DNA from: Rebecca billardiae RCC1528
Lineage: Eukaryota > Protista > Haptophyta
Direction of reading: 5' to 3'
NCBI GenBank assembly: GCA_965240325.2
Contig: OZ251225.1
Coordinates: 3,348,001 to 3,412,000 of the forward strand
DNA length: 64,000 nucleotides
In this document: positions 195 through 30,968 of the stretch, piece after piece
Layout: each line of letters opens with the position of its first letter
How positions within the stretch are numbered: the stretch's first letter is position 1
Translations under genes and position numbers: made by a program
Notes under the pieces: generated by a model
What the model was told of the DNA's origin: nothing
What the model saw: only the letters and a program-made list of their open reading frames with translations
The model's database searches: none

Positions 195-449
195 ACATCC
201 AGCACCGCTCTGCCCCGAGCCCGAGTCGGACGGAGCGTGAGCGCGGTCCGCACGCGACGCCGGTCCGTGCCGTTCGGCCGCAGTGGGCCCCTCCCTCGCC
301 TCTGGCTTCCGGGCGGGCCGCGGCAGCTTGTATTCACTGAATAGCATTTTCGTGAAAAATACCCGGAAAGCTCAGCTTTGAAAGCTGTCATATACTCTGT
401 ATATATTAATGATCGGCTACGCCGATCTTCGGGTAGTGAACAACGACGT

Positions 450-3400
450 TCAGGCGAGTGAGGTGCCCCGGGCACCTCAAGCGCGCGTTCGCGCAAAAGT
501 CCGCACCGCCGATTTTTCACAGTGGGCGGCAATTTCTGGCGCGCTATTTTCTGATTTTCCGCCGTGCGTGGCGCCGCCGCGTCGCGCGCGCTCTCGACGC
601 GCGCGAGCTGCGCGCGCGTGGCGGCGGGTTTGGCCGCGCGGCACTGGGACGGCTGGGTCCGCACGGCCGAGGAGGCCACTCTTGCCGCGGTGGTCGTGGC
701 GCGGGGATGTCTCCGCCGCTCGCAAACCTCCCGCGAGCGCCTCGCGCCGCCTCGCGCCGCCTTCACGCCGTCTCCGCGCGCCAACTGCACGCTCTGGACG
801 CCTCGGCGGCAGAGACGCGCGCGGCGCGGTTGTGTGCCGCGTAGACTGGGCCCATGCGCGTCCGCTGCCGGTGCGCCCCGACCACGCGCGCGCGCATCCC
901 AGACCTCTCGCCTCACGCGTCGCCGCCGAGCACGGCCGTGCACCGCAGTCCGCCGTGGTGCCGCCCGCGCGGCCGAGCGAGCAGGCGGCGCGTTGTGGAG
1001 CGTGTGACGCGCGAGGCGGGAAGGCTTCAGAGCGCCCGAGCCACCGCCGACCGGCGGCGCGCACGCGATTGGCTCGAGCCATGGGCGCCGACGGCGCGCG
1101 CGCGCGCTGAGCCAGCTGAAGACTTGTGCGCCATGGCACGGCAGCCGCCAATCGCGGCGCGCGGGCGTGCTGTGCGGCAGGCGCGCTCGGTGCGGGCGCT
1201 TCGGGGCGTGGCCTCACGAGAACGGAGCCCCTGGAAGCGCGACGCCTGTGAGCTCGCCCCGGCCCGTGTGAGTGTGCGCGCATCTGTCAGCAGCACGGGG
1301 TGGCCGTCATCATGAGCCATGGCCTGGTCACTGCCGCGCTGGGTGTCGAGTGTCGACCAGGCACAAAGAACAAGCGAGCATGCGCACTTTTGAAGTTCTC
1401 GCATGCGTGGTGCGGCGCTGTGCGTGCACGATCATGCTGGTGCATGCGAGACCATTCAGCAGGGCTGTGCGCGTTATTGATCTCCGTACCGGCAGAAGGC
1501 TGCCGGCATCCCGGTGTCCAACGCTGCACCTACGCTGACACCTTGAGACGCTCTTGTCAGCCAGAAACGCGCGCTTCGAGCGCCGCGTGCCCAGGTAGCA
1601 CGACCCACTACTTCCTGGCTTACGTCAGACCATGTCGGATGACCTGAGCAGCAGTTGGCGTCATCGTGCGCGGGGGCGCGCGCAAGCCGGCTCTCACTCT
1701 GCCCAACGTGCGAGGGCGTAAGGCGGGGGCGTGTGCGCACGAATCGAGTGTCAGCAGCAGCGCTCGCTCGCGCTCACCGGCGAGAGACGTCTGCTCGCAA
1801 GTCGTCTGGGTCAGCAGGCTACCAGCCGTGATAGACGTTGCAGCAGATGGGTTGGAAGGCTCCACCGCACGCCGGGCACCAGGAGGGCGTGAGCGACCGC
1901 AACCGCAGCCGCGCCTGCGTCCGCGAGAGGGCTGAGCACCTGGACCTTGCGCGTCGCCCTGTCTGGGCGTTGGACCAGATGTCTGTACCCCGCCCTCAGC
2001 GTCGCGCGCGGGCTCTGAGCCTGCTGGCGTCTCAACGGCCTACTCATCCGCGCTGTTGTCGCCATCATCGAGGGAATCACGACCGTCGGCCAGATCGTCG
2101 AGCTCGAGCGTGGCAGCCCATCGGGCCACCGTCTTCCTCGTCACCCATACCGACCATACCGGCCTCCCGCTCGCCACCCTGAGCTATGCGCCTTCGACAG
2201 AGCTCTCGCGCGCGCACGCCATCACAAAGGCTGGCACCCCACCACCCTTCAGGCCTGCCGGGAACTTGCTGGTGAGCAGTGGGTCTGCGCAGACGCGGCT
2301 GCTCCCGGACCGTGCGCCGTGAGTGAGAGAGCTGCCGTGGCGCGCCCGCCTCGGAGTGAGCAGGCCAGCAACACTGCAGCCATAGCTCTGTGCGCTTCTG
2401 ACACTGGAGGGCTACGACTTCTGACCAGTAGAGTCGCTCTCTCTCTCTACGGAAGCACGTGGCTGGCATCGGACAGACGCTCAGATGAAACGCGTCAGGC
2501 AGCATGCAAGTGCTCGCATGCGTGCGCGCAAGCGCACGCGGGCCCAGGTAGCCCCAGAAGCCATACAACTACGCTTCATGCGGCGCTGTTGCCGTGTGTC
2601 GTGGCGCGCTCAGCGCGGCAGTGACCAGGCCATGGCTCATGATGACGGCCACCCCGTGCTGCTGACAGATGCGCGCACACTCACACGGGCCGGGGCGAGC
2701 TCACAGGCGTCGCGCTTCCAGGGGCTCCGTTCTCGTGAGGCCACGCCCCGAAGCGCCCGCACCGAGCGCGCCTGCCGCACAGCACGCCCGCGCGCCGCGA
2801 TTGGCGGCTGCCGTGCCATGGCGCACAAGTCTTCAGCTGGCTCAGCGCGCGCGCGCGCCGTCGGCGCCCATGGCTCGAGCCAATCGCGTGCGCGCCGCCG
2901 GTCGGCGGTGGCTCGGGCGCTCTGAAGCCTTCCCGCCTCGCGCGTCACACGCTCCACAACGCGCCGCCTGCTCGCTCGGCCGCGCGGGCGGCACCACGGC
3001 GGACTGCGGTGCACGGCCGTGCTCGGCGGCGACGCGTGAGGCGAGAGGTCTGGGATGCGCGCGCGCGTGGTCGGGGCGCACCGGCAGCGGACGCGCATGG
3101 GCCCAGTCTACGCGGCACACAACCGCGCCGCGCGCGTCTCTGCCGCCGAGGCGTCCAGAGCGTGCAGTTGGCGCGCGGAGACGGCGTGAAGGCGGCGCGA
3201 GGCGGCGCGAGGCGCTCGCGGGAGGTTTGCGAGCGGCGGAGACGTCCCCGCGCCACGACCACCGCGGCAAGAGTGGCCTCCTCGGCCGTGCGGACCCAGC
3301 CGTCCCAGTGCCGCGCGGCCAAACCCGCCGCCACGCGCGCGCAGCTCGCGCGCGTCGAGAGCGCGCGCGACGCGGCGGCGCCACGCACGGCGGAAAATCA

Positions 3401-3502
3401 GAAAATAGCGCGCCAGAAATTGCCGCCCACTGTGAAAAATCGGCGGTGCGGACTTTTGCGCGAACGCGCGCTTGAGGTGCCCGGGGCACCTCACTCGCCT
3501 GA
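450..3502. mobile_element. Non-autonomous foldback/long-TIR DNA transposon with 892-bp TIRs
   Basis: 450-1341 is a near-perfect reverse complement of 2611-3502 (mirror ORFs 477-1283 and 2669-3475). ACGT flanks both sides (446-449, 3503-3506), and removing the element restores the family A end motif. No transposase is recognisable in the 1269-bp spacer. Confidence 0.9.
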
Positions 3503-3553
3503 ACGTTGATGGCGCACGGCCCTGGTAGTTGTCGCGTTCTTTACCGCCAATCA

Positions 3554-4641
3554 CTACGATGCGCGCGCCCGGCGCGTCCGGCCGTGCAGGAGGCGCGGGC
3601 GCGAGTAATCGACTCGATCGACGGCCTCGGGGGGCTGGGCCGTGTCGAACTCGACGCGCAGCAGCCGCAGCGCCTCCGCCCGGTGCGCTTCGGGCAGCCC
3701 TGCTGTGGCCGCGCGCAGTCCGCGGAGATCGCGCTCGGCAGCTCGCCCGTCAGCCTCGCACAGCCTCGCGCGCTCGGCAGGATCGGCGCAGCGTCGGACA
3801 AGCTCGCGCAGCTCGTCCTCGGCGTCGGCGGGGAAGAGCGTCGCGAGCAGCTGCGGCTCGAGCCTGTCTACGATGTCCCGCAGCCGCAGCAGCCGCTCCT
3901 TGCACGCCCTCGGCGTCTTCCCCTCGAATGCGGGCCGCACGCGCGCTGCGAGGTGAAGGTCGCGTGCAGCACGTGCGCATACTGCGACTGCAGCAGGCCA
4001 ATGTCCCGCGGCTCGAGCCTGTCTACGATGTCCCGCAGCCGCAGCAGCCGCTCCTTGCACGCCCTCGGCGTCTTCCCCTCGAATGCGGGCCACGCGCGCT
4101 GCGAGGTGAAGGTCGCGTGCAGCACGTGCGCATACTGCGACTGCAGCAGGCCAATGTCCCGCGGCTCGAGCCTGTCTACGATGTCCCGCAGCCGCAGCAG
4201 CCGCTCCTTGCACGCCCTCGGCGTCTTCCTCTCGAATGCGGGCCACGCGCGCTGCGAGGTCGCGCCTGCAGCACGTGCGCCGATCGATACTGCGACTGCA
4301 GCAGGCCAATGACAAAGTGTCCTGCTCGATCGTCCACGACGCGAGTCGTTCTGCGTGTAGAAGCGCAGGACGTGCTGGTCGTGCATGGTGCGCAGCGCGG
4401 TGTGCAAGCGCGCGAACGCGCGCTCGGGCGAGTCCTCCGGCAAGAGCTCGTCCTGCGGCTCGGTGCCCGGCTGCCGCTCTCCCTGCCTGCGCGCCGCCGC
4501 ACGCCGCGCGGACAGACAGACAGCGTCGCCATCACAGCCGGTGGGTAACGAGGCCTCGCGAGTGGCGCCAAGCTGCGCAGCGGCGAGGCCGGTGGGGTCG
4601 ACGTCCATGTCGGTCACGGACGCCACGGTAGTGTCGCTCAT
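3554..4641 (-). pseudogene. Frameshifted unknown ORF in A1 cargo with an internal 51-aa repeat
   Basis: Protein-like reading is split across ORFs 3868-4641 and 3554-4315, with the repeated peptide RAWPAFEGKTPRACKERLLRLRDIVDRLEP. Confidence 0.5.
3853..4311. repeat. About 153-bp tandem repeat, 3 copies
   Basis: Units begin gcggctcgagcctgtctacg at 3853, 4008 and 4161. Confidence 0.9.
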
Positions 4642-5491
4642 GCGCCTGCCCGTGATCAGTCTCAGCTCTGAGGCGCGCGCTCAGGAGGGCTGCGGCCGGG
4701 CCGAGCGCGATCCGTGCGCCTGGACGGTCCGAAGTCTGGCGGCTCATGCAGCCAGCCCAGCAAAGCCCGCTCCGCCATCCGCGTCATGGCGCTCCAGCCT
4801 CTCGCGTGCTGCGCTGCAGCCGTGCTCGGCCGAACGACGCCCGCAGAGCCCGCCGGGCATGCGGCTGAGCAGTGGTAGCCCGAGGCGAGGAACGGCCGCG
4901 TCGTCGCCGGGCGAACTCTGCCGGCTGGGTCGGATGCGGCTGAGCAGTGGTAGCCAGGCGAAGCGTCGTCGCGGGCGAAGCTGCGCTGGGTGATGCAGCT
5001 CGGGTCGGTGGGCAAGTCGCACCCCGCCGTCGGTCGCCTCCACGCCCCAGGCTCGCTCGAGGTCGAGTCACCTGCGCGGCGCGGCAGTCCGATGGCCGTG
5101 TTCACGTACTTCACTTCGTCGGCGCGGGCGTGACGCCGCGGGCCGGGCGTGGCGGGGTGTACACTTTGGGCCGAAGACGCATGGCAGGGCGGGGCGCGCG
5201 GGGTGAGCGAGGCACGAATGAGATGCCGACGGCTGTTGGGACCCGCCGCAGCTGCAGTGCGCGGGCACCTGCGCTGAGTCGCGCGCACCGCGGCACGCAA
5301 AACGAGAGCCTTTCGGCTTTTGAGCAACCTCCGATCGCCCTCGGTCGCTCGCTCGGCGTGTGCCGGCGCCGCCAAATAACGCTTGCGGGTAAGATTCCCT
5401 CATTTGGTCATATCACTCATTCGGCCACGCCCGCACGGGGGCGCATATCTGGTCGAAGCGAACCGCCGTTTTTGTGAGTTTGTACATATTA

Positions 5492-7987
5492 CCGATTTTG
5501 GGCAACTGAAAACATGATTCTGCACTTTTTTGAAAAACGCACTTCAAAAAGTTTCAACTTTTGAAAACCGGATTTAAAACATGTTTTGTTTTGTTTTTGG
5601 AAAAGAAGTTTTGCCAAAACGAAACAAAAACCGAAAACGTTTTTCAAAACCTGTTTTCAAAACGTGTTTTCAAAAAGTGCAAACCTGTTTTCCCTTTTTC
5701 AAAAACGTTTTCACTTTTTGTCTTTTTCCAAAAAGTGACGCTCGAAAACACACGGGAACAGAATGGCGGCCAAATGTTCACTTTAGGGTGCCGCCGCGCG
5801 ACGCGGGCCGGCGGCCTAGTAAGAACCCTGAGCCGGCGCGGACGGGCACTGGCAGGTGCGCAACCACCCAACACATGCTCCAGGCACCGCTCACCAGCCC
5901 CTGCCACTTCGTCTCCTCGTCTATTACTGCCCGCGACACGCGCGAATGTCATCTCAATCGCCCTGGCGTCGCGCGACCGCGCGGCCGCGCGCGCATGCGG
6001 TGCGCAGGCGTCAGATGGCGGAGGTGGTGATGCGGTGCGACGCGCATGGACGATCTCGCGCAGACGCACCTCGCTCGCAGGCCCGCTGCCACTGGATGCG
6101 CCCGGCTGCACCGTCCGTTTGCTGCGCGCAGTCGCAGCCGGCCGTTCTTGTCGACGGTGTTGGTGCGCTTCTTCATGATCTTCATCTTGCCCACGATCAC
6201 CTGCTTGGCGGCCTGCTCGACGCGGCCAGCTCGCGGCATGCTCGTGCCGCGTCTGTTCGAGCTCAGCCCGCCCGCCCGGCACGTGCGGTCGCGGAACGTG
6301 TTGCCGATGATCTTGCCGTCGTGCTCCGACGCTTGTGTGCTCGCGCGGTGCAGCTCGCCGCCGAGTCGCACGATGGCGCGAAGGGCGATGGCGACGACCA
6401 CGTGCGGGTGGCACGCGACCGTGCTCGTCCACCGCTTGAGCTCACGCACATACGCGCACCTGGCGTTGAGCGCAGCAAGCACCATCACCTTCACCTCCGC
6501 GGCGGTCGTCGGACGCCGCCGACGAGTTCGCGCACCGCCACCAACCACAGTCGGCAGAAGTCCTCACACGTGAGCTGCGGCTGCTGCGGTGCCTGAGCAG
6601 CGTTGGCGTAGCCCTCGCACGGCACGTTGGCGTCACGCGCGTGCTGCATCCTCTGCTGCCCGCCGTCACCGGCGTGGCCCTGGCCCTGGCGGTACCTGGC
6701 CGCACGCGGCGCGCACTACGACTCGTCGTGTCCGCCGACTTTGCGTCTGCCGACGGCTCGGTCCACTGATCGTCAGCCCTGGGCTCCGCGGCCGTGCAGC
6801 GTCACTGCTGTCGTGCGACGATCGCATCGATATGACTCACAGCGACTCACGCGTACTTGTGTCGTAGTAGTATGGCAGCGTCATGCACGGCATCAGACGA
6901 CTGATGACGAGGGCTCCTGCCCGAAGCGCACGCGGGCCCGCGGAGGCGGATGAAAGTCGAAAGACATGATCGGCTCGTCCGGACGCGCGCATCATCACGC
7001 TGCTCGTCGCGCCCAGATTCCGCTGCTCGCCATGATGACGAACGAAGCACGGACTCCTGCAGGCCGATGTGCTCAGCGGCGCGCTTACTGCGTCGGCGAC
7101 AGGATCCTCCATCAGCTCCCGCCCCTGGCCCTGTCGCAGCAGGGCACGGCTGAGGGTCACACCCGCTGATGGCCGGGCGAGACCAAGCATCAAGCGCGCA
7201 CGCATGCGCGGTCGCCGCGGCGCACTCGCGCGCACCACCGGAACCTCAACGGTCTTCTTGCGCGTCATGCGGATGACCTGCATTGCCCTGCAGACGGTCG
7301 GCTCGCTGACGCTCAGGCCATACCACAGCGCAAGGCGTGCACACGTTTGCGCCAGCGTGTCTCGCGGGTACATCTTGACGAGTGCTTTCAGCAGGAAGAG
7401 CTGGGGCAGGTCGAAGATCGGCGGGCCAGAGGACGCGACGCCGCCCGACTGCGTGCTCACGATCTGCTGCGTCGCGAGGTACTCCCGCACCCACTTGAAC
7501 ACGGTCGATGAGCGATCTCGTCGTACGTGCACGACGAGTTGCCCGCGCGCAGTCGGAGGGCAGTCCCCACGACGCGCTGCCGAAGAACCACGTCGTAGCT
7601 CCTACCCTGTCGGTACACGCCGTTGTGCGCGTTGACTGCGATCCGCGGCCGTGGCTCGCGCGGCATCTCCTGTCGCCGCCGATTGCCCCGCCGCGCGACG
7701 CGGTGGACAACGGTCTTTCTTTCCTCTCCAAGAAAACTTTTTCAAAACAAAACTTGTTTTGTCAAAACACGTTTTGAAAACCTAAGTTTTGTTTTGTTTT
7801 TTCGAAACACGTTTTGAAAACTTGTTTTTGAAAACGTTTTTCAAAAAACAAAACAAAACAAGTTTTTCGAAAACATTTTTTCAAAAAGATGTTTTGTCCA
7901 AAACATGTTTCAAAAAAGGAAAAAAGTTCAAAAAACAAAACAAAACTTGCAAAAACGAAATGCATGTTTTCAGTTGCCCCAAATCGG
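5492..7987 (-). mobile_element. IS630/Tc1-mariner-superfamily DNA transposon relic
   Basis: TIRs ccgattttgggcaactgaaaacatg / catgttttcagttgccccaaatcgg are flanked by TA on both sides. AT-rich subterminal arrays of aaaac(g/atg/acg)tttt motifs lie at about 5530-5750 and 7730-7960. A transposase HTH fragment is present inside. Confidence 0.85.
7246..7666 (-). pseudogene. IS630/Tc1 transposase N-terminal DNA-binding region, frameshifted, DDE domain not seen
   Basis: VNAHNGVYRQGRSYDVVLRQRVV...YDEIA, frameshift near 7505, then STVFKWVREY...LVKMYPRDTLAQTCARLALWYGLSVSEPTVCRAMQVIRMTRKK, matching the typical VSxxTVxRxLxxxxxTRKK motif. Confidence 0.75.
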
Positions 7988-8737
7988 TAATAATAAGTCC
8001 ATCTCAGAAATGGTACGGCGAAACGGTGCGAAAACGCGTGCCTAGCCGTTTTTGATTAGGCGAAGAACTGGCAGGGTGCATTTCGCGGGTACCAATAGAC
8101 ACACGAGCCGCGACGACGAACGTCGTGCCATAATACTGTTGATACTGAAACGTTGTTTTTTAAGTGTGGTTCTCTTCAGAGGAGAAGGATAATAGGAGAC
8201 GATACTTTACTCCTTGAATTGGAATCAGAAAAACCACAAGTGTATATCAGCAGGAGAATCACGAACGGCCCACCATAATTATCAGAAAGATGCAGACGCC
8301 TTTGTCCTATTCGAGTTCGATTTCTTCTATAACTTACTATCCAAGGATTAAGGAGCAGTACAAACGCAATCATGAGCAGCGATATCGAGTCAAATGCGGA
8401 TTTCACACCGCTAAATCCACCTACAAAACTCCCCCAAATCCTGCGCGCATCCTCTTTTTGATTTTGCGGAGCACGTGCGCCGCCCCCCCCGGCTTTCGCT
8501 CACGCTCAGACCTTTCGGGGGGGCCGTGCGCCATCAAGGGGGGGAATCAAGCGTCGTACGTGAAGTGGTAGAAATTCTCATGCTCATGAGACTTTCAAGT
8601 CCCGGCCATCATTCGTTGATGAGTGAATTGAGGACTCATCAACAAATGCTCATATGCATCAAGCTGTCCCAGAGGCAGAGACGCCGGTGCGGAGAGCGAG
8701 AACGTTCGTCTTCAGGTTGTGTCGTTCATCTCAAATA

Positions 8738-10834
8738 CGAGAAGCGACGGTTCATGACTTCAGATGCCGGCATGATACTTTACTTCAAGCGACATAAAAG
8801 CCGACCGAACCTCTCTTTTCTATGGTTGGCGAGCTGTTTCAGGCTCTTACAATTCAGGCATATTACTAGGACGGAATGCTCGAACACACGGCTGGTCTTT
8901 TGTGGACAGGTTGCACGGAAAAATGACCGCCCGCGACTGACAGATGTTACATTCACAGTGGACGTGACCTGTCCACCCATCTTTCGGTACATCGCGCCCG
9001 TCCCATGGCGGCCGGCGCGTGGCGCGAGTGCTTGGAAACCACGGAGCACACGAATGCCGGTGGTTTCCGACCTTCGCCGCCACGGCCCGCCTCCCCGTTC
9101 GCCCGCAATCGGTACCGCAGTCTGGTGCCCAGTTCCTCTCACTCCCGCGTCGGCAGTGGCGCGAAGCCGAAGCGCATCGGGAAGAAGCACAACTGGGACC
9201 TCCGGGATACAGGTGGTAGATAGAGCCTTCAAGGAGGCTGCCGTCGCGAACGAGCAGGATGTGCCGGTTGTAGTATGCGCGTGCACCCTTGCACGAACGT
9301 GTGCTGGTCTCCTGCTGCACTGCTCATACCGTACGCACGAGCACGCAACCGTGCGCACGCGCTCAGGTGGCTCAGACCACACACGCGAGTGCTTGTGAAG
9401 CTCGCCTCACGAGGCCTTCGTAGAAGAAGGCGGGCAACCGGAGCGCGCTAAGGAAACAGAAGACGATGCTCGCCAAACGCGTCCAGCGCACGAGGGCGAA
9501 GCTTGCTACGGCGCGCGCGGCCTCTGCTGTTGCAGCTCGGGCCGCTGCTCCGGCCGTGCAGGCGTCTGGCGCGGGGTCCTCGGACAAGCAGGCGAACTCT
9601 GGGCAGTCTGCCTTTGCCGCCGGCAAGAAGGATCGGAAGCGCACGCATTTGGTCGAGCGCGTGGCTCGCTCGCGCGCCGTGACGCAGCAAGCAGGCGATC
9701 CTTGACAAGCGCCTCGCTGACGCTCAGCAGGCCGAGGCAACAAGCGCGGCGCTCGACCACGCTGACAGGCACGCCCTGAGTGAGGGGGAAGGCACCTTTC
9801 GAGACAGCACTCAGGCGCTCGACGTTGAGTATCTCATTGATCGCGCGCGTGTGTGATCACGTCAGCAAGACTAAGTCGCGCGAGGTGGAGTAGGTGGTAG
9901 CGCGCCTCTTCGCCGCATCATCCGCAGCTGACTGGCGTGCACCCGCCAGCTCGCTCACGTGGCACGCGGCAGCGGTCGGCTTCCACCCTGTTCGCACAGC
10001 GCGGCGCCGGCTGCACCGCCCGTTCCGCTGGACGCCGGCTCGCTCGTCGTTGACGACTTCTTCTTCAACCCGGTCGCGCGGGCGCGGTGATGGTGCACTC
10101 CGGCAGGCAGATGCGGCGCACTGTCTGATGCTCTATGCGTGCGCGTGCCTTTCCACGACGTCGACTCGGGCTGCTACGCGTGGCATCCAGCTCGAGGCGG
10201 AGGTCGCCAGGGCTCGCCCAAGGTCGAATCTGCCTTGCGTGTGCTGGGTCGCCGAGGTGCGGCCGCAGGGTGCTCGCTGGCTGACTCCTGACGATGACGA
10301 GGAGTTGCGCGCCGTCGCAACTTCTCGCACGTATCGTGCCGACCGCGAGTCGAGTGGATGACGCTCGTGGCGGCTGCTCTTCAAATGACGCGGTCGGGCC
10401 CTTGGCGAGCTTGGGAGGAGGGCTCGGTCTGCTACATGTGCGTCAGTAGTCACGGCCTAAACCGTGCGCAAGACTCATTGAGTCGTACATGGCGCGGCAG
10501 CAACGGCCGCACCCGCGAGGGCCCGTGGGCGGGCAGCCATGCTCCAAAGGGCCGAAATGTAACACCGAGGTCAGTTTCCCGTGCAACCTGTCTGCATGCT
10601 ATTCCGCCCTGCATTCCCCTAAGTGTTACTATCGTTAAAATTAGCATCCACTACAAACGCAATCATTGCGGCAGCGATATCCACTCATACGTACGCAAGG
10701 CCACCCACAAAAATCCCCAAAATCCTGCGCGCATCCTCTTTTTGATTTTGCGGAGCACGTGCGCCCCCCCCCCCCCCCCCCCCGGCTTTCGCTCACGCTC
10801 AGACCTTTCGGGGGGGGGGGGGGGGGTGCGCCAT
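8738..10834 (-). mobile_element. Family A element, copy A2 (hairpin end not found)
   Basis: Terminus ...cctttcg(g)ntgcgccAT at 10834. 8738-8900 plus 10597-10834 are colinear with about 39730-40145 of A5, and partly with the first 320 bp of A3/A4. Confidence 0.75.
8905..10592. mobile_element. Short-TIR non-autonomous DNA transposon nested in A2
   Basis: gacaggttgcacggaaaaatgacc (8905-8928) vs ggtcagtttcccgtgcaacctgtc (10569-10592), 22/24 inverted match. It interrupts a sequence that is continuous in A3, A4 and A5. Confidence 0.8.
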
Positions 10835-11020
10835 AATAATAATAATATTATCGTATTATTGCATTATTCGTCATTGAATTTGAAAGTCGCATCGGCCCGT
10901 ACTCCTAGCTGGTCCTAGGCGCACGCCTCTTTGCTCGAGCGCGCTTTTTGTCAGCAATAACAAGGCGTGCTCGAGCGTGACACGTGAGCGCATAAATTAT
11001 AGCAGCTATCGGATTGACTG

Positions 11021-12851
11021 ATGGCGCACGCCCCCCCCCCCGAAAGGTCTGAGCGTGAGCGAAAGCCGGGGGGGGGGGGCGGCGCACGTGCTCCGCAAAA
11101 TCAAAAAGAGGATGCGCGCAGGATTTTGGGGATTTTTCGGTAGGTGGCCACCGCGTATGAGTGGATATCGCTGCCGCAATGATTGCGTTTGTAGTAGATG
11201 CTAATTTTAACGATAGTAACACTTAGGGGAATGCAGGGCGGAATAGCACATAACACCAGCCGTGTGTTAGAACATTCCGTCATAGTAAGATGCCTGAATT
11301 GTAAGAGCCTGAAACAGCTCGCCAACCATAGAAACGATAGGTTGGGTCGTCAGCTTTGATTCACGCGCTTCTGAAAAACAGCGTTTTAGATTAGACGCAT
11401 CCCTCTTCTCTTAAGAGAACTGCGCTTCAAAAACACCGTTTCAACGAAAGACGATCGCCCGCCATTCAACTGAAACGAGATTCTGCATAAAGCGAACCAA
11501 AGATGTTATTGCGCGGGTAGTCCGAACCGACGTTCCCGCGCGCTCTCATATCATACGGCTATCGAGCTACTGACTTGCTCATGCGGGTGGGATTCGACAT
11601 CTCTATCTGCGAGGATTAACAGCTCTCTGAAAACGAGTGTGTCCTGGACAACTTGAAAGGGCAGCGATCGGCTTTGATTCTGCCTATTGTAGGGAAAGTT
11701 TTATGGTACGAGTTAACGAACCGTCACTTCTGATGGGCTCTCTGGTCGCGAACAGTCGCCAACTGCCGAGCGGAAGCGCCCGAAGCGGAGGCGTCGGGGG
11801 CGGCGGCTGAAGGGAGCGAGGGCGGTGGTGGCGGCACCGAGGACGAGGGAGGCGCGCCGAACGGCATGTCCGTCCTCACCCTCGCCATCGGCGGCCGCCC
11901 GCGCGTCAACGCCGCCGGCTCTCAGCCGACGACAACGCCCGCGAGTGCCGCCCACGGCGCGCGGCGGGCGCGTCACGGCAGGCGGCGGGGGCGGCGACTG
12001 CAGGGAGCGAGGGCGATGGTGGCGGCGCAGTCGAGGGAGGTGCGCCATCCGGACAGCGCGGCGGCGCGGCGCGCGGCCGAGCGCGGGAGCCTGGGCGGCG
12101 GCGGGCGCGCGGCGGGGCATGTGCTCAGTGCTGCCCGAGAGGCTGGCGCACTCGCCCAGCGCCGCCGCGCACACCGCCGCCGACCTCGCGCGCACGACCT
12201 CCGTCAACTCCTCCGTCAGCGGCGGAGAGCGCGTCGCCTCGCCGCCCACGCTGCCGCCCAGCCGGTTCGTCATCCGAGCGCTCGCCGGGCGCGCGCGGCG
12301 TGACGCGCCGGGCCGCGGTCGCCGCCTACTAAGTGGTGGGACCGCCGCTGGGGGGCGGGGCGGGCGGAGGAGATGGCGGTGGCGAAGGAGGACGCGGTGG
12401 TGGACGTGGACGTCACGCTGTCCGGGCTGCACTGGCTCATCCACCTCCTCTCTGCACTCGACCCACCGCCGTCACCGACGGCGCAGCAGCTGGCGGCGGC
12501 GCGACGGATGCATTCCCGGATGGTGGCGGGCGCGGCCTCGGCCGAGGCGGGCGCGCGCCGCGCGCGCCGCTGCGGCGGCGTGGAGCGGCGGGAGCTGAGC
12601 GGCGCGCTGCTGCACACGCAGTCACGCTGCGCACGTGCTGCAGACGCTGTACGAGCGCGCCACCGCCGACGCCGTCGCGCCGCCGCTGCCCCCGCCGCAC
12701 CGGCACCGTCCGACCGTCCGACCGTGTCGTCACAAGCCGCGGCTGCTGCTCACATTCACAAGCTCACTAGCTGCGTGATGGTGACTAGCCACTAGGGCCG
12801 TGCGCCCTCAACTTCGTTGTTCACTACCCGAAGATCGGCGTAGCCGATCAT
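11021..12851 (+). mobile_element. Family A element, copy A3
   Basis: Starts ATggcgcacg(c)ngaaaggtctgagcgtgagcgaaagcc(g)n and ends gggccgtgcgccctcaacttcgttgttcactacccgaagatcggcgtagccgatcAT. Confidence 0.9.
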
Positions 12852-14718
12852 GGCGCACGGCCCCCCCGAAAGGTCTGAGCGTGAGCGAAAGCCGGGGGGG
12901 GCGGCGCACGTGCTCCGCAAAATCAAAAAGAGGATGCGCGCAGGATTTTGGGGATTTTTCGGTAGGTGGCCACCGCGTATGAGTGGATATCGCTGCCGCA
13001 ATGATTGCGTTTGTACTGCCCCTTAATTTTAACGATAGTAACACTTAGGGGAATGCAGGGTGGAATAGCACATAACACCAGCCGTGTGTTAGAACATTCC
13101 GTCATAGTAAGATGCCTGAATTGTAAGAGCCTGAAACAGCTCGCCAACCATAGAAACGATAGGTTGGGTCGTCATCTTTGATTCACGCGCTTCTGAAAAA
13201 CAGCGTTTTAGATTAGACGCATCCCTCTTCTCTTAAGAGAACTGGTGGGCCGTTCGTGATGGTGGGCCGTTCGTGATTCTCCTGCTGATATACACTTTTG
13301 GTTTGCTGTTTCCAATTCAAAGAGTAAAGTATCGTCTCCTATTATCCTTCTCCTCTGAAGAGAACCACACTTCAAAAACAACGTTTCAGTATCAACGTAT
13401 TACAATGCGGGTGGGATTCGACATCTCTATCTGCGAGGATTAATTAACAGCTCTCTGAAAACGAGTGTGTCCTGGACAACTTGAAAGGGCAGCGATCGGC
13501 TTTGATTCTGCCTCTTGTAGTAAAGTTTTATGGTACGAGTTAACGAACCGTCACTTCTGGTATCTCTGGTCGCGAACAGTCACGATCCAACCGCCGCCCG
13601 CACGTCGGCGCGAGTCCCGGTGCGATGCGGCGGCCTTTGTAGCGGCCAGGCGGAGGCGTCGGGGGCGGCGGCTGAAGGGAGCGAGGGCGGTGGTGGCGGC
13701 ACGGACGAGGGAGGCGCGCCGAACGGCATGTCCGTCCTCACCCTCGCCAGCGGCGGCCGCCCGCGCGTCACCGCCGCCGGCTCTCAGCCGACGCCGCCGC
13801 CCGCGAGTGCCGCCTGAATGAACGGCGCGCGGCGAGCGCGTCACGGCAGGCGGCGGGGGCGGCGACTGCAGGGAGCGAGGGCGATGGTGGCGGCGCAGTC
13901 GAGGGAGGTGCGCCATCCGGACAGCGCGGCGGCGCGGCGCGCGGCCGAGCGCGGGAGCCTGGGCGGCGGCGGGCGCGCGGCGGGGCATGTGCCATGTGGC
14001 GCATGTGCTGCCCGAGAGGCTGGCGCACTCGCCCAGCGCCGCCGCGCACACCGCCGCCGACCTCGCGCGCACGACCTCCGTCAACTCCTCCGTCAGCGGC
14101 GGAGAGCGCGTCGCCTCGCCGCCCACGCTGCCGCCCAGCCGGTTCGTCATCCGAGCGCTCGCCGGGCGCCCGCGGCGTCACGGCGGCGTGCGCCGGGCCG
14201 CGGTCGCCGCCTACTAAGTGGTGGGACCGCCGCTGGGGGGCGGGGCGGGCGGAGGAGATGGCGGTGGCGAAGGAGGACGCGGTGGTGGACGTGGACGTCA
14301 CGCAGTCCGAGCTGCACTGGCTCATCCACCTCCTCTCTGCACTCGACCCGCCGCCGTCACCGACGGCGCAGCAGCTGGCGGCGGCGATGGTGGCGGGCGC
14401 GGCCGCGGCCGAGGCGGGCGCGCGCCGCGCGCGCCGCTGCGGCGGCGTGGAGCGGCGGGAGCTGAGCGGCGCGCTGCTGCACACGCAGTCACGCTGCGCA
14501 CGTGCTGCAGACGCTGTACGAGCGCGCCACCGCCGACGCCGTCGCGCCGCCGCTGCCCCCGCCGCACCGGCACCGTCCGACCGTCCGACCGTGTCGTCAC
14601 AAGCCGCGGCTGCTGCTCACATTCACAAGCTCACTAGCTGCGTGATGGTGACTAGCCACTAGGGCCGTGCGCCCTCAACTTCGTTGTTCACTACCCGAAG
14701 ATCGGCGTAGCCGATCAT
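12850..14718 (+). mobile_element. Family A element, copy A4, head-to-tail with A3
   Basis: Same two ends as A3 and a diverged duplicate of its body. The junction ...gccgatcATggcgcac... shares one AT. Confidence 0.9.
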
Positions 14719-14719
14719 G

Positions 14720-14738
14720 TATATATATATATATATAT
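14720..14738. repeat. (TA)n microsatellite between A4 and B1 ends
   Basis: tatatatatatatatatat. Confidence 0.85.
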
Positions 14739-14741
14739 CTA

Positions 14742-16918
14742 ATGACCGCGTTCCGCGGTCCTTTTCCGTAGAACCAACGCAGTTGGGGGCCCGCGGCGCA
14801 GTGGTTGAGAATGAGACCGTGACGTCGTCAATCCGCACGGTCTGGCGTCTGCCTGGCAGTCAGACAGGCAGCCGCACCGTCTCGGAGAGTGAGTGAGAGT
14901 CAGACCCGTCCGTCGGACTCGCGGCGCGTGAATGGGCGCGCCGACGGCCAAGGGTGGCCGGCACGGGACACCAGCGGACGGGCCGCGCGGGGAAGCGGGG
15001 CGGCGCGCGCGCAGGGCGAGAGGCGCGGACGGGCCGCGCGGGGAAGCGGGGCGGCGCGCGTGCAGGGCGAGAGGCGCCGCGCGGCGCGGGCCGGCGCGTG
15101 CGCGCGCGCGCGCGCACCTGCTTGAGGTGCTCGCGCTGCGCCATGCGCTCGACGAAGGGCCGCTGGTCGCTCAGCCGGCGCGCCTCGGGCCGGCATAGCG
15201 AGAGCGCGCGCCACTGCTGCCCGCCCACGCTGCGCAGCCACGCGCAGACCGAGCTCCGCTCGGGGTGGGACGAAGCGAGTGGCGTGTCGCGCCCGCCGCC
15301 AGGCGCACGCGTGCCCTGCTCCGCACCGCGCCGCCGTGCTCGCCCGCCGCCTGCTCCGCCGCGTCGGCCTCGAGGATGGCGGCGGCCAGCGGCAGGCTGA
15401 GTGGCGCGCGCTCGCCCACCGTAGCTTCGAGGGCCGTCCACACCTGCTCGAGCTGCTGCAGGGCGTGGACAAGGGCAGCGCGCGCGCCCAGCGCATCCGT
15501 GCCGCGTGACGCAGCGCGTCGAGCTCGGCGTCTCGCTTCGCCAGCTCGGCGCCCAGCGCCTCTGCGCGCACGCGTCGAGCTCGGCGTCGCGCTTTGCCAG
15601 CTCGGCGCCCAGCGCCTTCACGCGCACGTGCTCGTGTATCTGCGCGCGCACGGCCTGCGCGCCGCCGCCCATCTGCGCGCGCAGACTCGGACTCGTCGCG
15701 GCTGGCTGCTAGGGAGTGCTAGGGTGCGCGCCGCGTAGTCGATGGCCAAGGCCTGCAGCCAGCGCGCCTGCACCGAGAAAAGAAGGCGCGGCACGCGCGC
15801 TATAACCCAGTCCACGCAGACACGCGAGCGCGTGCTCGAGCGGCGCGCCGGGGGCGACCGTCCACGTCGGCCGCGCGGGAGCCGCAGGTACTCTCGCGTG
15901 CCTGCGCGACGCAGCGCGCACGCACAGCGAAACGGGCGCGGGGTAGAATTCAGGAGAGCGCCGCCGCCCGCGCACCACCCCACCGAGAGTGCGCACATGC
16001 GCACGCCACGACATGGCACGACATGGCGCACGATTGACGCAACGCCCGACAGACAGAAGCCTTCATCGACAATCCGCGCGCGCCCGCAAACGCGGCCGCG
16101 CGCGCGGGCGGGCGCGCGGGCGTGCGTGCGCCACCCGCGCGGGAGGCGCCCGCGGCCGCGCGGGCGGCGCGCGCGCGGCGCGCGCTCCGCGCGGTCGTCC
16201 ACACCGATGGCGGTCGATCGAGGGCTCGCCCCGTTTGGCGGTCGATTTTGATCGAGGGCTCGCCCCGTTTTTGGAGCGAGCGCGTGCCGCGCGCCCCCTG
16301 GCTCCCAACTGGGTATGATAATACCCACAATTACCCAAAATGACCTTATGCCCCCAACACCGTTATCATAGCGAGCCAATGGCAATGTACTGATATGATA
16401 GACTGAACGATAGTACCCACAATTACCCAATCAAGAGGCGATACAGCCCTTGCCTTGCTCGCTATGATATGATAGACTGAACGATAGTACCCACAATTAC
16501 CCAATCAAGAGGCGATACAGCCCTTGCCTTGCTGAATGTCTCGCACTATTGGAGTTGGTTGGACTCGGCTATAATGTTGATCAACTGTCGTTCTAGTGAT
16601 GGCATCTTGCGGCGGCGAGGCCATATTATTTTACTATGGTCACACTACATTAAGGAGAGTCTACCCACAATTACCCTGCCTCGCACACTTGGGCGTGGGT
16701 TTCGTTGATTCCTCTGTTCACTATTCAAGACGGCGGACGCGCCCTTTTTCGACGCTAATGCACCTGTAAGGGAGTCTCAAAATCGAAACTCGGTCTCCTC
16801 CAGCCCTAAAAAATCGCCCCCCGTCCCTTTTTTCTTGATCAAAGATCTTTTTGAAACGTGGTTCGGGCCCGCTGGTGCGGGCTCCACGCTGCGCGCTCCG
16901 CCCTGCACCGCGGGCCAT
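14742..16918 (-). mobile_element. Family B asymmetric-end element, copy B1
   Basis: Hairpin end ATgaccgcgttccgcggtccttttccgtagaaccaacgcagttgggggcccgcggcgc at 14742; opposite end ...ccctgcaccgcgggccAT at 16918. Confidence 0.85.
16391..16533. repeat. About 74-bp tandem duplication inside B1
   Basis: tgatatgatagactgaacgatagtacccacaattacccaatcaagaggcgatacagcccttgccttgct twice; the core tacccacaattaccc also occurs near 16322 and 16662. Confidence 0.85.
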
Positions 16919-16962
16919 AATAAAACATATTTAATTCGCGACGATCATCATGCATATCTATA

Positions 16963-19352
16963 ATGGCCCGCGGTGCAGGGCGGAGCGCGTAGCGTGCAGC
17001 CCTCGCCGAGGGCCCTCACTACGTTGTCAAAAAGATCTTTTGATCAAAGAAAGGGGGACGGGGGGCGATTTTAAGGGCGGCTGTCGGAGGGTGAGTTTTC
17101 GCTTTTTCGAGGGGTACATTGGCCCATTGCTCTGCATTAGCAAGACGCATTGACGAAATAAGCGCGCCCGCCAATTCGCCATATGTCGATGGACGGACGT
17201 GGGATCAGATACCCGGGGGTGAAACAAGTGAGTATTCCTGTCTTTCGTGTATGCTGGAGTACGAGTTTGCCGAGTGACGTTTGATTGTTTCGAGTCAAAA
17301 ACTTGTTATAATAAGGATCCCAGCAAAACCGTTAATTGGAGCTACGGGAGCTACGACCTAATGGAGATCGCCGTAAACGCTATTATCTCGTTTGGTTTTG
17401 ATTCTTGCCGAAGCAGAGATAACCGTGATCACTATCTATCTCCAATCGATCTTACGCGAAGGATCCCAGCAAAACCGTTAATTGGAGCTACGGGAGCTAC
17501 GACCGCTAATGGAGATCGCCGTAAACGCGCGCTACTGTATTATCTCGTGTAGTTCTGATTATTGCCAAAACAAAGATAACCGTAATCGCTATCTATCTCC
17601 ATTCGATCTTAATTTATGGGGGTACTCGATCAGGCTATTTGATTTTGAAGCGGTTGCTCAGGACTGGTGCTCGCACCGCAGATGGCGCGACGTGCCGCGT
17701 GGGCGGCGGAGGCGGCCGCCGCCGACGCCTCGCCCGGCGGCGGCGCGTGGCGTGGCACGCGGGTTCAGGCCAGGTGCCGCAGTGCATCCAGGACCGCCGC
17801 CGCGTCAGGACGGCGAGCGCACGGGCCGCGCCCGCCGCCGGGGCGTGCGGCCGCCAGTCAAACTCGGCGCGAACCGCGGCAGTGAAGATGATCAACACAG
17901 CGAAGAAGCAGGTGGTGATCGAGGCGCTGGGCCTAGTGGGCCTGAACATGATGCTGCGCATCTTCTTGGGCCTGCCCGACGCGCACCCCACGCAGACGTC
18001 GCTTCTGGGCGAGTGGCACTCGCGACCCGTGACTGTTCCCGGTCGACTCGCTCGCACTTCGCAGGCCGTGCTCACTCAAGCTGGTCTTCGTCTACTGTCC
18101 TCCGCGTCGCGACGATGGGCTCGACGGAGCCGCACAACCTGCAGCTGCTGCAAGATTCATTCACGCACCCTGCGCGTGCGCTGCCCCGAGACTCCGCGCC
18201 GCCGCCACCGCGCTGCGCGCCGCTCGCTGCCGCGGCGCGCAGGCCCGCTCCAGTCCGTGCCCGGCGGGCTCGCCGCGGAGCCGAGCGCGATGACGACCTC
18301 GACGTGTCAGTGGTCAGAGTCTGAGACGACTGACAAGTGACAGTCCCCGCCGCGCGCTGCGCGCGGCGCGCCGCGCGCTGCCGCGGCGCGCAGGCCCGCT
18401 CCAGTCCGACGCCGAGTGCCCGGGCCGGGGGCTCGCCGCGGAGCCGAGCGCGATCGGGCGACCTCGACGTGCATGTCTTGGTGTGCGGTGGCTCCGTTTT
18501 ATTGATTTCTCCGACGTTTACTGGCGCCCGCTCTCAGTGCCCGCTGTCCGGATCGGTCAATCATACTCTAACTAGCTCGGTTCTAGGCCGCGCCGCCGCA
18601 GCGCCTCGAGGCTCGATTGGCTGAAATTCAGCTCTAGTCTGCCAGACCCACTGTCGGCATAAACGGAAACGGCACGGGCAGCTGTGAAAGTTCTACGACG
18701 CGGTCAATCCGAATCACTAGCTTAGCAACGGGCGCAGACGACTCACAACGATTGCCGGGTGTCAGGAGCCTGGTATTATTAGTGTTACTCGAGGGACTGG
18801 TCGCAACCGCCTCCGGGGCTGCGGCCGTCACCCCGCTGGCGCCGGGCGGCCCCCGGGGTCGCGGCGGACTAGCCGCGCAGCCATTCCGGTCCGGGGCGTG
18901 CGGCCCCGGGCTGCCATCGGCATCGGCATCGGCATCGGGCATCGCCATCGGCCCCCGGGCCGAGTTGCCGAGGCAAGCCGACGTGCCGCTGCGAGCCCGG
19001 GAGCCTTGACTCTTGAGGCTTGACGTGGCATGGCCCATGCGGCAGTAGTTAAATCGCCGGACTGGCCCGGTATCGCCATCGGCGATCCACGGAGTCCTCG
19101 CTCGGCCCCGGGGCCGCAGCCCGGGCCCGGTAAGTGGGCGGCAACTGAGTCGTGAGTAGTGGCACTGCTCACAGGCGAACTGTTGGTTGGCACCGACGGT
19201 CAGACTAATAATAATCTTAGATGACAGACAGCGTCGTATGACGATACAATAAATACATACTCTTAGTAGTAGCAGCCGACAGAGACTAGAGAGTCGGCAC
19301 CGCGGGCCCCTAACTACGTTGGTTCTACGAAAGGACCGCGGAACGCGGTCAT
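16963..19352 (+). mobile_element. Family B element, copy B2
   Basis: Starts ATggcccgcggtgcagggcggagcgcg and ends gcaccgcgggcccctaactacgttggttctacgaaaggaccgcggaacgcggtcAT followed by (AT)n. The first about 150 bp are homologous to B1. Confidence 0.85.
17313..17611. repeat. About 147-bp diverged tandem duplication inside B2
   Basis: aaggatcccagcaaaaccgttaattggagctacgggagctacgacc...ctatctatctcca..cgatctta occurs twice (17313, 17459). Confidence 0.85.
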
Positions 19353-19921: not shown

Positions 19922-20575
19922 TTATGTCAAATCGATGGCATCGCCGCGGATGAGCGCCGCCTGGTACTCCATCGCGGCGTCGGACCATGTTGATTCGCCG
20001 TTCCGCTGCGGCCGGCTCCTGCGCTTTCCGCGAGCGCGCTTCGCCGCCCGGCGTTGCTCAAGCTCGGCGGTCGAGTTCGAGCGCTTGAGCTGCGGCGTAC
20101 TGTCGCGAGCAGGGGCCTTGCCGCCGCGCGGCGTGCCGCTGCCGGCGGGGTTCGCCGACGTGGAGGCGGGAGCCGCGGGCGTGCCGAGAGCGCTGGGGCC
20201 TGCTGCGTTTGACGAGCCGAGCGCTGCCCCGCTCGCCCGCTGCGACGCCGCCTGGTCCTCGAGGGACTTCTTCAGCACCTTCGAGAGAACCTCGTCCCAC
20301 TGCTCGACGTCGTCATTCGCTTCCGGCGTCGTGGCGTGCGTCGAGGCCTCGAGCGCGTGGGCGAGCATCCAGTCCTCCTCGACCTGCGCGGTGCGGGCTT
20401 CCTCCAATGCGGCCGCGCGGCCGGTGCGAGCGCTCGGGTCCGGCTGCGAGAGCGCGAAATGCTGCGCGTCATCCTCCGCGTCGTCGTCGAGCTCGTCGGA
20501 CGGTGAAGCCGAGCGTGCGGCGGCCGCGGCCGTGGCCGGCGCGCCGGCGGCCGCCGCAGCCGGCCCCGGCGCGCT

Positions 20576-20628
<53 letters not shown>

Positions 20629-23600
20629 TGGCGGCCGGTTGCGCGCCGGTCGTCGCAGTGCCGGGCGCTGCCTGGCCGCCCGAGGGCGCGCGCACCGCAT
20701 CAAGCACCGACTCGTTCACGAAGTACACGAGCTTCCTGCCGACCTTCTCCTTCATCACGAGCGCGCCGCGCGGCGGGCGCGACACGCAGAGCGCGGCCAG
20801 CTTGGACCGCACGTCGGCGGCGTTCATCTCGCTCGCCTTCACCTCGCCCTCGTGGCAGAAGCTGTCGTAGTGGCGCGGGTTGGCGCCGATCTCCTCGCTC
20901 ACATCGGCGGCACTCATCGCGTAGTCCTCGCTGAATGCCAAACCGTCGATCAGCACCTGCAGCACTGCGCGGAGCGCGCTCATGCCGCCCTCCTGCAGCT
21001 TGGCATCCTCCGCCTCCGCGCCCACCGCCTCGCCCGGCAGCGGCGGGCGCGTGTTGAGCTGCTGAGCGTCGAGGCCGAGCTTCTTCTGCCCGATGGGGCG
21101 GTCGACGGGCAGGTACTGGTTCGCCGCGCCGCGCGTGAGCGCGCTGGCCAGGTCGGTGTGGTGCAGATCCATCTGCCGCTTGATCTCCTCGAGGAACGTG
21201 GGGTACTGCTTGACCAGGTCGAAGGTGCGGCCGGTGGTGAGCAGCTCGACGTGATCAAAGCCGTTTGCGCGCAGCTGCGAGTGCTGCTCGCCGTTCGCGC
21301 GGCCCGCGGCCTGCACGAGGCGGCACATGCTGATGCTCTCGCCGTGCAGCAGCACGAAGTGCGATGGCACGCGCCGCTTCGAGCGGTACGAGATCCCGCG
21401 CACGAGCTGCGAGAAGCCGAAGACGAAGATCGGCCGCTTCGGGTACAGCCGGTCGATCTCGTCGAGAATCAAGCTGAAGATGCGCTTCCGCCCTTCGAAG
21501 ACGTGGAACTTGCGGTCGGAGGGGCGGTCGCCGCGCGGCTCGTCGGTGCGCCAGCAGATCACGCTGCCCGAGACGACGATGGCGATGGCGCGCGGCACCT
21601 TGCACAGCAGCCGTTGCGACTTGGTGAAGATGTTCCCCCTGGCCGTCACCGCCGAGCTCGTCGCGTCCAGAACGAGCGCGCGCTCGTGCGACGCGGCGCC
21701 GTGATAGAAATCGAGCACGGTGGGGCTGATAAAGTCGTTGGCCGGCTTGAGCTCGCCGGGCTGGAGGAAGCACGGCGCGCCGGTCGCGTCGATCGGCGGC
21801 TTGAAGCGGTCGGTGCCGACGTACTCCTCCGACGCGTCGGTGTACACGATGTCGGCACCCTCGATCTTGTCCGCGGCGCCCGTCTCCTTGTAGATCATGT
21901 AGATCGCGAGCAGCGTCGCCGTCACCTCGAGCTGCAGGATCGGGCCGAGCTCGCGGAGCTCCTCGAGCTTGCGCTCGAGCTGGATGGCCTGGCTGAACTG
22001 CCCCTCGCGGTGTGCTGCGGCGGTGCGGTAGAAGTCGTCTGCCTCGTCGAGCACCAGCGCGAACTGCAGCTTGCGCGCGGGCTGGCTGCCGCGCATCACT
22101 GCGAGGCGCGGGTCGATCGACTGGCGCTCTGCAGAGCGGATGAGCTCGATCGCCCTCTCGATCGCCGCCGGCGAGTGGTTGATGACGAGGCAGCCGCCTC
22201 TGACCAGAGTGTCGAGCACCCACTGGCGATGCCTGCCCTGCTTGAATGGGTGCTTGATCACGAACGTCTTCGCGCTGCGCGTGCCCATGTGCTCCGCCAG
22301 CTGCGGCAGCGAGCCCGGCACACGCTCGTACCGGAACTCCACCTCCGAGCCCGGCCTGACGGCCGGCTCGGGGTAGGGCACGTCGACGCCGTCGAGCAGC
22401 TCAAAGAATTTGGAGAAGAGGTCGTCGCGCCCGCTCGTGCCCGTGGTGATCACCACCGTCGCCACGCCCATCATGCGGCACAGCACGACCGTGCACACCT
22501 TGAGCGGCGTCTTGCGCGACTGGCACTTGCCGCCGCCCAGCATGCGCCGCCACGGCTCGTCGAAGTACTCGCGGTCGGAGCGGTCGAGGTGGGCCAGGCC
22601 GCTGGCGATGTTGTCATGGACGCGTCGCAGGAACGGCACGAGCTCGAAGCGCAGCGACTGGCGCAGCGGCTCGATGCTCATGATCAGCTCGAACGCGTCG
22701 CACACGACTTCGGGCGTGTCGGACCAGAACGACGGCTCGCGCTGCTCGCGCACGGGCATCGCGCCCGTGGCGGGCTGGTGGTCGCTGCGGTCGTCGGCGT
22801 CGGCGTCGGCGCCACCCTCCGCGTCGTTGTCGTCGTCGTCATCGAGGTCCTCGATCTCGTCTTCGCCCGCGTTGGGAGGGCTGGCGGGCTCCGACGGCGG
22901 CCGCCCCCCGCCGTCGCTCGCCCCGCCAAGCCGGTCACCGAAGTGCGATCTCAGCAGCGCGCCGATCGTGTTGAGGATTGCGACCGCCGCCCGGCCGTTG
23001 CCGCGCATCTCCTCCGCCTGCCTGCGCAGCTCCGGCACGAGGTTCGTGCGCAGGCTGCTGCTGAGCGGGGTGGCGGCAACGATCGCGTCCGCGGCCGCGT
23101 CCAGCAGTGCCTTCAGCTCGGCCTTGCTCAGCGGCACGCGGCTTTGCGCCTTCTCGCGCAGCCGCACCAGCGCGGGCAGAGCGCACAGCGCCGAGAGCAG
23201 GTCCGGGCTGGCACTCGGCGCGCCCGTCGCGCCGTCCGACGCGAGCGCGGCGGAATCGACGTGCGCGGCCGCGCGGACGAGGAACCGCGCAAGCTCGCCG
23301 CCGTGGCGGTCCGGTTTGTCCACGTGCTGCGCCGGATCGCGCCGGATCAAGTCGACGAGCATGTCGAGGATGGCAGGCTCAACCCCGCTCGCCTCACGGA
23401 AGCGCTCGAGAACCTCCGCCTCGCTCGGCTCCGCGCTCGGCCCCGGCGGCGGCAGCGCGGGCCCGCTCGGCTCAGCGCTCGGCCTCGGCGGCAGCGCAGC
23501 CGCGGCCGCGGCCGTAGCGGTACGCGCACTCGAGCTCGCAGCAGCGCGCTGGCTCGCGGCTTCGTCCGAGGGCGCGTTGGCTGGCTCCAGCTCGGGCAGG

Positions 23601-30850: not shown

Positions 30851-30968
<118 letters not shown>

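Follow-up and report, generated by a model that had tools for sequence, protein, structure and literature searches.

The 64,000-nucleotide stretch analysed here (positions 3,348,001 to 3,412,000 of contig OZ251225.1 of the haptophyte Rebecca billardiae RCC1528; hereafter the window) is eukaryotic sequence of ∼68% GC. Its genes are long and contain few introns, and include an Integrator-11/CPSF73-like gene and genes for a sulfatase, an MFS transporter, a FAD monooxygenase and LRR, VPS9 and PQ-loop proteins. The window also holds repeated elements of two families, A and B, which are bounded by AT and are the subject of this report. An earlier, sequence-only reading had described seven such elements with a single architecture and had proposed them as non-autonomous members of a possibly undescribed group of mobile elements.

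To inventory the elements, we trained a covariance model on five tails, ran it over the 64 kb, and located heads by BLAST; orientation is given throughout as head to tail. The scan returned exactly six tails, at 47–85 bits, and no other match above 17 bits (the next scored 16 bits). Seven heads were found. Both ends are present in six elements. A1 (409–8534, minus strand) itself accounts for ∼2.6 kb and harbours two nested transposons. A3 (11021–12851, plus strand) and A4 (12850–14718, plus strand) are complete and lie head-to-tail, with one AT (12850–12851) common to both. B1 (14742–16918, minus strand) and B2 (16963–19352, plus strand) are likewise complete and lie head-to-head, 44 bp apart. 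A5 (35906–40145, minus strand), also complete, is found between the sulfatase gene and the MFS transporter gene. The seventh element, A2', is represented by a head on the minus strand (10597–10834 plus 8739–8904), split by a 1.7-kb element with terminal inverted repeats (TIRs). The window contains no A2' tail, which would sit to the left of position 1 were A1 nested inside A2'. The single architecture claimed for seven elements is thus seen in the six that have both ends, and for A2' it can be followed in the head only.

The A1 tail is interrupted. Its match to the model (409–466, minus strand) scores 47.5 bits, and its terminal part (409–450, minus strand), which contains the AT, the terminal hairpin and the first half of a second, smaller hairpin, is 96% identical to the A3 tail. 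A nested foldback transposon (451–3501) parts this terminal hairpin from the A1 3' asymmetric inverted repeat, which lies at 3511–3522 on the minus strand and reads GGCGCACGGCCC on the plus strand. ATGGCGCACGGCCC at 3509–3522, which had been mistaken for a head, is actually the 3' repeat of the A1 tail, cut off by the foldback. The A1 head lies at 8347–8534 (minus strand) and is 84% identical to that of A4.

All of these ends are built to one plan. The head consists of AT followed by a 12-nt repeat (GGCGCACGGCCC in family A, GGCCCGCGGTGC in family B) that begins 0–2 nt from the element end. The tail consists of the reverse complement of this repeat, 1–2 nt, a CAAC-N3-GTTG mini-hairpin, a hairpin with a 7-bp stem and 3-nt loop, and AT. 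The terminal hairpin is present at six ends, as GATCGGC-nnn-GCCGATC in A and GACCGCG-nnn-CGCGGTC in B. The 3' repeat is followed by 42–44 nt before the terminal AT is reached, which places it 44–46 nt from the end in 6/6 complete copies. Deviations are few: the head repeats of A3 and A5 match at 11/12 positions and that of A2' at 10/12, the B1 tail repeat carries one mismatch, and the B2 mini-hairpin has TAAC in place of CAAC, giving a T-G wobble. At the left, the elements begin (AT)GGCGC in A and (AT)GGCCC in B; at the right, they end ...GATCAT and ...GGTCAT, respectively. The outer extremes of the elements show no inverted symmetry (GGCGCAC... versus ...GCCGATC), and the repeats are asymmetric by 45 nt.

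Among the copies, tails (46–60 nt) are 93–100% identical and heads (180–400 nt) 80–96% identical. Because such highly identical ends surround unrelated interiors, their repetition is beyond chance. The repeated, AT-bounded elements of the sequence-only reading are therefore real, and its 12-mers, terminal hairpins and spacing were all recovered.

The 5' repeat also lies in a hairpin. In 7/7 heads, the 12-nt repeat pairs with bases 30–50 nt downstream, with predicted energies of –20 to –33 kcal/mol. The GC-richness of the sequence keeps the corresponding z-scores modest (–1.5 to –3.9). In family A, the arms of these hairpins include runs of C and G (8505–8520, 10770–10825, 11031–11082, 12860–12901 and 40084–40134) whose lengths co-vary: they range from C7/G8 (A1 and A4) to C17/G20 (A2'), possibly through slippage under the constraint of pairing. 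The B2 head also holds a weak tail-like module (17003–17047; 16 bits with the tail model), in which the distal arm of the hairpin looks like the 3' repeat and is followed by CACTACGTTG and by a small hairpin. Possibly, the 5' end imitates the 3' end in part.

The A and B tails can be aligned, and a comparison of the two families shows how their differences are distributed. In the terminal hairpin, 3/7 pairs are altered on both sides, and 100% of the cells are paired; sliding the partner by 1–3 columns destroys the pairing. In the 12-nt repeat, 4/12 positions differ between A and B, and every one of these changes is compensated in the tails. Hence, as the sequence-only reading had noted, A and B differ in sequence and keep their pairings. 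Head and tail belong to the same family in 6/6 complete copies. When tail and head are joined in silico, as they are at the A3/A4 junction, A3, A4, A5, B1 and B2 all fold alike: the 12-bp repeat stem closes a three-way junction, in which the AT, located between the terminal hairpin and this stem, remains unpaired. These data suggest that the end structures are under selection.

The insertion sites also share a motif. TNAT lies ahead of 7/7 heads (TGAT, TTAT, TGAT, TCAT, TGAT, TTAT and TAAT), and both families end in TCAT, with a variable base 3' of the tail. A T is found at –4 in all six independent flanks, for which the chance expectation, given local base composition, is ∼1e-3. The flanks are AT-rich or consist of (TA)n, and such DNA is rare in this genome. 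Two readings of the boundaries are compatible with the sequence, namely G...TCAT, or T...TCA between A and T.

The A3–A4 pair can be considered in this context. A4 starts directly after the TCAT of A3, and since the element end TCAT is itself a TNAT, a new copy could land right after an older one. Identity between A3 and A4 is only ∼92%; a 200-bp block is swapped, the A4 version being shared with A1, yet the last 300 bp of the two are identical. A second insertion after the TNAT-like end of A3 fits this arrangement better than does a recent duplication.

Between these conserved ends, the interiors are heterogeneous. Those of B1 and B2 are unrelated, A1 and A5 are partly in common, and A3 and A4 share theirs. 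They hold internal tandem repeats and lack a gene-like signal in GC3 (GC content at third codon positions). We searched 203 stop-to-stop open reading frames (ORFs) of the window (at least 90 or 170 aa) against Pfam and found no Rep, helicase, recombinase or transposase. ORFs inside the A and B elements gave 0 Pfam matches, in line with the earlier description of these mobile elements as non-autonomous. The most coding-like ORF of A1 (3871–4680, minus strand) has no homologue and thus provides no evidence of gene capture.

Three further transposons are nested in A1 and in the A2' head. The foldback at 451–3501 has ∼900-bp arms that are 99.9–100% complementary, a 1.27-kb centre and ACGTT at both flanks. 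It sits exactly in the loop region of the CAAC..GTTG mini-hairpin of A1, its ORFs have no Pfam match, and it is not part of the Helitron-like element. The second transposon within A1 (5487–7992) is a degraded Tc1/mariner-IS630-like element that is bordered by TA at either end and has 30-nt TIRs (97% complementary) and subterminal arrays of repeats resembling TTTTCAAAAC. Its ORF at 6840–7601 (minus strand) encodes a helix-turn-helix (HTH) remnant (HTH_32, E=0.045), and relatives of this ORF carry DDE_3 and HTH_Tnp_IS630. We considered the HTH ORF as a candidate transposase for A and B and rejected it, as it belongs to the nested Tc1/IS630-like element. The third (8905–10596), with TIRs beginning GACAGGTTGCACGG, is the 1.7-kb element that splits the A2' head; A3 and A5 show the corresponding sequence uninterrupted and so provide a paralogous empty site.

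What kind of element has such ends? The architecture, rather than sequence identity to any named family, points to Helitron2/HLE2, and we consider it probable that A and B are two related families of non-autonomous Helitron2/HLE2-type rolling-circle transposons, a kind that also goes by the name of HINE or DINE-1-like elements. In Helitron2, the 5' repeat lies 0–2 bp from the end within a 5' hairpin, the 3' repeat is subterminal and directly upstream of a hairpin, and related families show compensatory changes (PMC3627910). Canonical HLE2 elements, as defined for HELIANO, have 12–16-nt inverted repeats and a stem-loop after the right repeat (PMC11417382). In HINE/DINE-1 elements, the subterminal inverted repeats (subTIRs) lie 2–4 nt from the 5' end and 38–60 bp from the 3' end (PMC4067079). 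In FoHeli1/2 of Fusarium oxysporum, a 12-bp repeat lies 38–51 bp from the 3' end, hairpins are found at both ends, and insertion occurs after TNAT (PMC5148889). The published Helitron2/HLE2 end features, namely asymmetric inverted repeats of 8–16 nt (5' copy 0–4 nt and 3' copy tens of nt from the end), a 3' stem-loop and, as in Helitron2 and DINE-1, a 5' hairpin formed by the 5' repeat, are all present in A and B. Autonomous members of this group encode a RepHel of the HLE2 clade, and the group inserts in one orientation at short motifs, with no target duplication, typically at T^T and, in Fusarium and Chaetomium, at TNAT^.

The likeness extends to details. A and B share with FoHeli1/2 and with Chlamydomonas Helitron2 (PMC3627910) the 12-nt asymmetric repeats with a terminal 5' copy in a hairpin. 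With FoHeli1/2 they also share the position of the 3' copy (∼45 nt from the end here) followed by stem-loops, and a TNAT directly ahead of the head, after which A and B would have inserted. Compensatory changes between families and a tandem, joined-end configuration are further traits in common with Helitron2/HLE2. The HINE/DINE-1 group (PMC4067079) offers non-coding, heterogeneous interiors, some with internal tandem repeats, along with the same subTIR spacing, a short inverted repeat beside the 5' subTIR and a 3' stem-loop. Ends of one family, tandem arrangement, unrelated interiors with tandem repeats and a lack of coding capacity, as seen here, are typical of non-autonomous Helitron-like elements. 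There are differences as well. The 3' end is TCAT here versus ATTTT in Helitron2/HLE2. A and B have two 3' hairpins, the CAAC-N3-GTTG mini-hairpin and the terminal 7-bp stem, the last of which is 2 nt from the end. Their host is a GC-rich haptophyte-like alga. HINEs insert at TT and have T runs at their boundaries (PMC4067079), whereas A and B have TNAT/TCAT in TA-rich DNA.

The other large group of Helitrons resembles A and B less. Helitron1/HLE1 elements have a 3' hairpin ∼11 nt from the 3' end. A and B share with them the absence of an obvious target duplication, a 3' hairpin, tandem arrays and boundaries consistent with insertion between A and T. Unlike Helitron1/HLE1, however, A and B lack 5'-TC and 3'-CTRR and have inverted repeats and a 5' hairpin. 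The sequence-only reading had placed the ends outside the known Helitron rules. TC...CTRR is absent and T^T is not obvious, but the architecture does match Helitron2/HLE2, and the AT boundary belongs to a TNAT that corresponds to the insertion site of FoHeli1/2 (PMC5148889). Its proposal of a possibly undescribed group is not borne out, as each feature it named falls within the published definition of Helitron2/HLE2 (PMC3627910, PMC11417382, PMC4067079). It had also named a match of the ends to an already classified family as evidence against that proposal; such a match is seen in the architecture, which is the level at which the ends were compared.

Several points weigh against the Helitron2/HLE2 assignment. 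No RepHel or other transposase able to act on the A and B ends was found in the window, and the 10 longest window ORFs include none. Exact patterns for the A tail and A head gave 0 matches in viral contigs and metagenome contigs, and a degenerate pattern covering A and B tails gave 0 matches in viral contigs. The terminal hairpin, 2 nt from the end, is nearer than the 8–35 bp given for HINEs. The T^T rule of HLE2 is not obviously obeyed and would hold only with the last T of TCAT counted as host sequence. Boundaries are read to ±2 nt, and a target duplication of AT is compatible with the sequence. Finally, one caveat is that the covariation draws on only two lineages, A and B, and hence is not statistically strong.

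If A and B are Helitron2/HLE2-type elements, their movement can be pictured by analogy with the biochemistry of Helitrons and IS200/IS605, and we infer that it depends on RepHel. RepHel, a protein with a Y2 HUH nuclease and a Pif1-like helicase, would come from an autonomous copy at another genomic locus and would nick one strand after T-N-A-T, the TNAT at the left boundary being host sequence. It would then unwind the DNA 5' to 3' and, as soon as the 3' hairpins had become accessible, make a second nick after the TCAT of the element. Pairing between the two 12-nt repeats of the released single strand would give the three-way junction, with the ends side by side and the AT of TCAT unpaired. 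The single-stranded circle would be pasted 3' of another TNAT, preferentially in one of the rare AT-rich islands of this ∼68% GC genome.

The sequence-only reading saw features of HUH rolling-circle elements in the ends, and in our analysis, too, they look like substrates of a single-strand (HUH, rolling-circle) transposase. Such a transposase need not be RepHel. A and B could represent an undescribed group of HUH transposons that has Helitron2-like DNA structures and uses another enzyme, either a helicase-less Y1 Rep, as in Replitrons, or a TnpA of the IS200/IS605 type. Bacterial IS200/IS605 elements have subterminal hairpins and insert, with no duplication, 3' of a tetranucleotide resembling their own right-end cleavage site. 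The A and B elements follow the same logic, in that insertion would occur 3' of a tetranucleotide (TNAT) mimicked by their own 3' end (TCAT). IS200/IS605 elements differ in being prokaryotic, in using a Y1 TnpA and in having no inverted-repeat pairing between ends. Replitrons are eukaryotic HUH-type, copy-and-paste elements with orientation-specific insertion after a short motif and a right-end palindrome, they are reported from algae and possibly haptophytes, and putative Replitron proteins are listed from two haptophytes (PMC10288648). The AT that bounds A and B on either side is loosely reminiscent of Replitron terminal direct repeats, and no RepHel is linked to these ends. Replitron ends, however, consist of short direct repeats (a 6-bp motif in Replitron-1) plus one right-end palindrome, without asymmetric inverted repeats (PMC10288648), whereas the direct repeat of A and B is just the 2 nt of AT, and their asymmetric inverted repeats and 5' hairpin are not Replitron-like. 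Moreover, because every structural feature, together with the TNAT target, has a precedent in RepHel-encoding Helitron2 elements, no new group is needed. We therefore regard a different HUH enzyme as unlikely. The particular version in which a non-RepHel enzyme such as a helicase-less Rep moves A and B, with Helitron2-like ends having arisen or been kept in an undescribed haptophyte group, is slightly less likely again.

Explanations that dispense with HUH enzymes fare worse. In Crypton-like elements, a tyrosine recombinase acting by crossover at an AT dinucleotide would leave AT at both junctions, and AT is indeed found at both boundaries of A and B, with a single common AT at the A3/A4 junction. 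The joined tail and head, a 12-nt inverted repeat around a spacer, also superficially resembles a recombination site. The conserved T at –4 of TNAT, however, falls outside a 2-bp crossover, and the window contains no recombinase ORF or domain. The spacer, moreover, is 45 nt long and holds two conserved hairpins, and the 3' repeat is duplicated in the 5' hairpin; these features suggest recognition of single strands and, to our knowledge, are not known for Cryptons. Cryptons also lack inverted repeats, which A and B have. We regard a Crypton-like origin as very improbable. More doubtful still is a cut-and-paste DDE origin of A and B, with AT as a 2-bp target duplication and with mobilisation by the HTH/DDE-like remnant in A1. 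The IS630/Tc1-type HTH of that ORF and the DDE_3 domain of its relatives speak for it, but the ORF lies within its own nested element, which is absent from A3, A4, A5, B1 and B2. In addition, A and B do not have the inverted repeats at the extreme ends that mark Tc1/mariner and other DDE cut-and-paste elements, and their subterminal repeats are offset as described above. The least probable explanation is that no transposons are involved and that one AT-rich region gave rise to the repeats by local duplication, either segmental or inverted. In its favour, 6/7 copies lie within 19 kb, and the neighbouring A2' and A3 heads are 98–99% identical in inverted orientation, which local duplication or gene conversion could explain. 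Yet A5 lies at a distance of 16 kb, its neighbours are unrelated genes, and its boundaries are sharp at exactly the same AT...AT. Similarity stops at the element ends, interiors differ while ends are conserved, and two sequence families keep one structure, all of which argues against simple duplication.

The remainder of the window provides some context for these elements. For the Integrator-11 ORF, the top named relative is from Pavlovales sp. CCMP2436 (72% identity), and the syntenic 21.6-kb locus of that alga contains no tail-like site. The window contains 0 tRNAs and 0 Rfam families. Long inverted repeats are found elsewhere in it as well. The third such repeat in the window (32583–33671) has 390-nt arms that are 99% complementary, with 309 nt between them. 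As annotated, the sulfatase ORF starts inside it, at 33421; the real start of this gene may lie downstream of the repeat. A foldback element at 59528–61783, unrelated to the one at 451–3501, has 902-bp arms that are 100% complementary and lies between the two copies of a perfect 9-bp direct repeat (CGAAAATAC), the length of a Mutator-like duplication. It adjoins a very GC-rich ORF of 1455 aa without a Pfam domain (55152–59519, minus strand). This ORF and another of 1269 aa (19922–23731, minus strand), likewise with no Pfam domain, are 70–82% GC and face long ORFs on the opposite strand; they could be either genes or artefacts of GC-richness. A long (CT)n microsatellite (30822–30977) occupies an intergenic position within a stretch of lower GC content (57–59%).

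In practical terms, the 19-kb block at 409–19352 and the A5 element at 35906–40145 should be masked as transposon in annotation, rather than treated as gene space. Transposons of pavlovophyte-like haptophytes are barely described, and we found no report of a haptophyte Helitron in the literature searched. If the classification holds, pavlovophyte-like haptophytes may with A and B have their first curated Helitron2-type families. The pair also constitutes a clean natural experiment, and it supports the proposal in the literature that transposition involves pairing of the 5' and 3' repeats. Finally, the combination of TNAT targets and TCAT ends suggests that fungal Helitron2 elements follow a nick-site rule of greater age and wider distribution than the T^T rule of textbooks.

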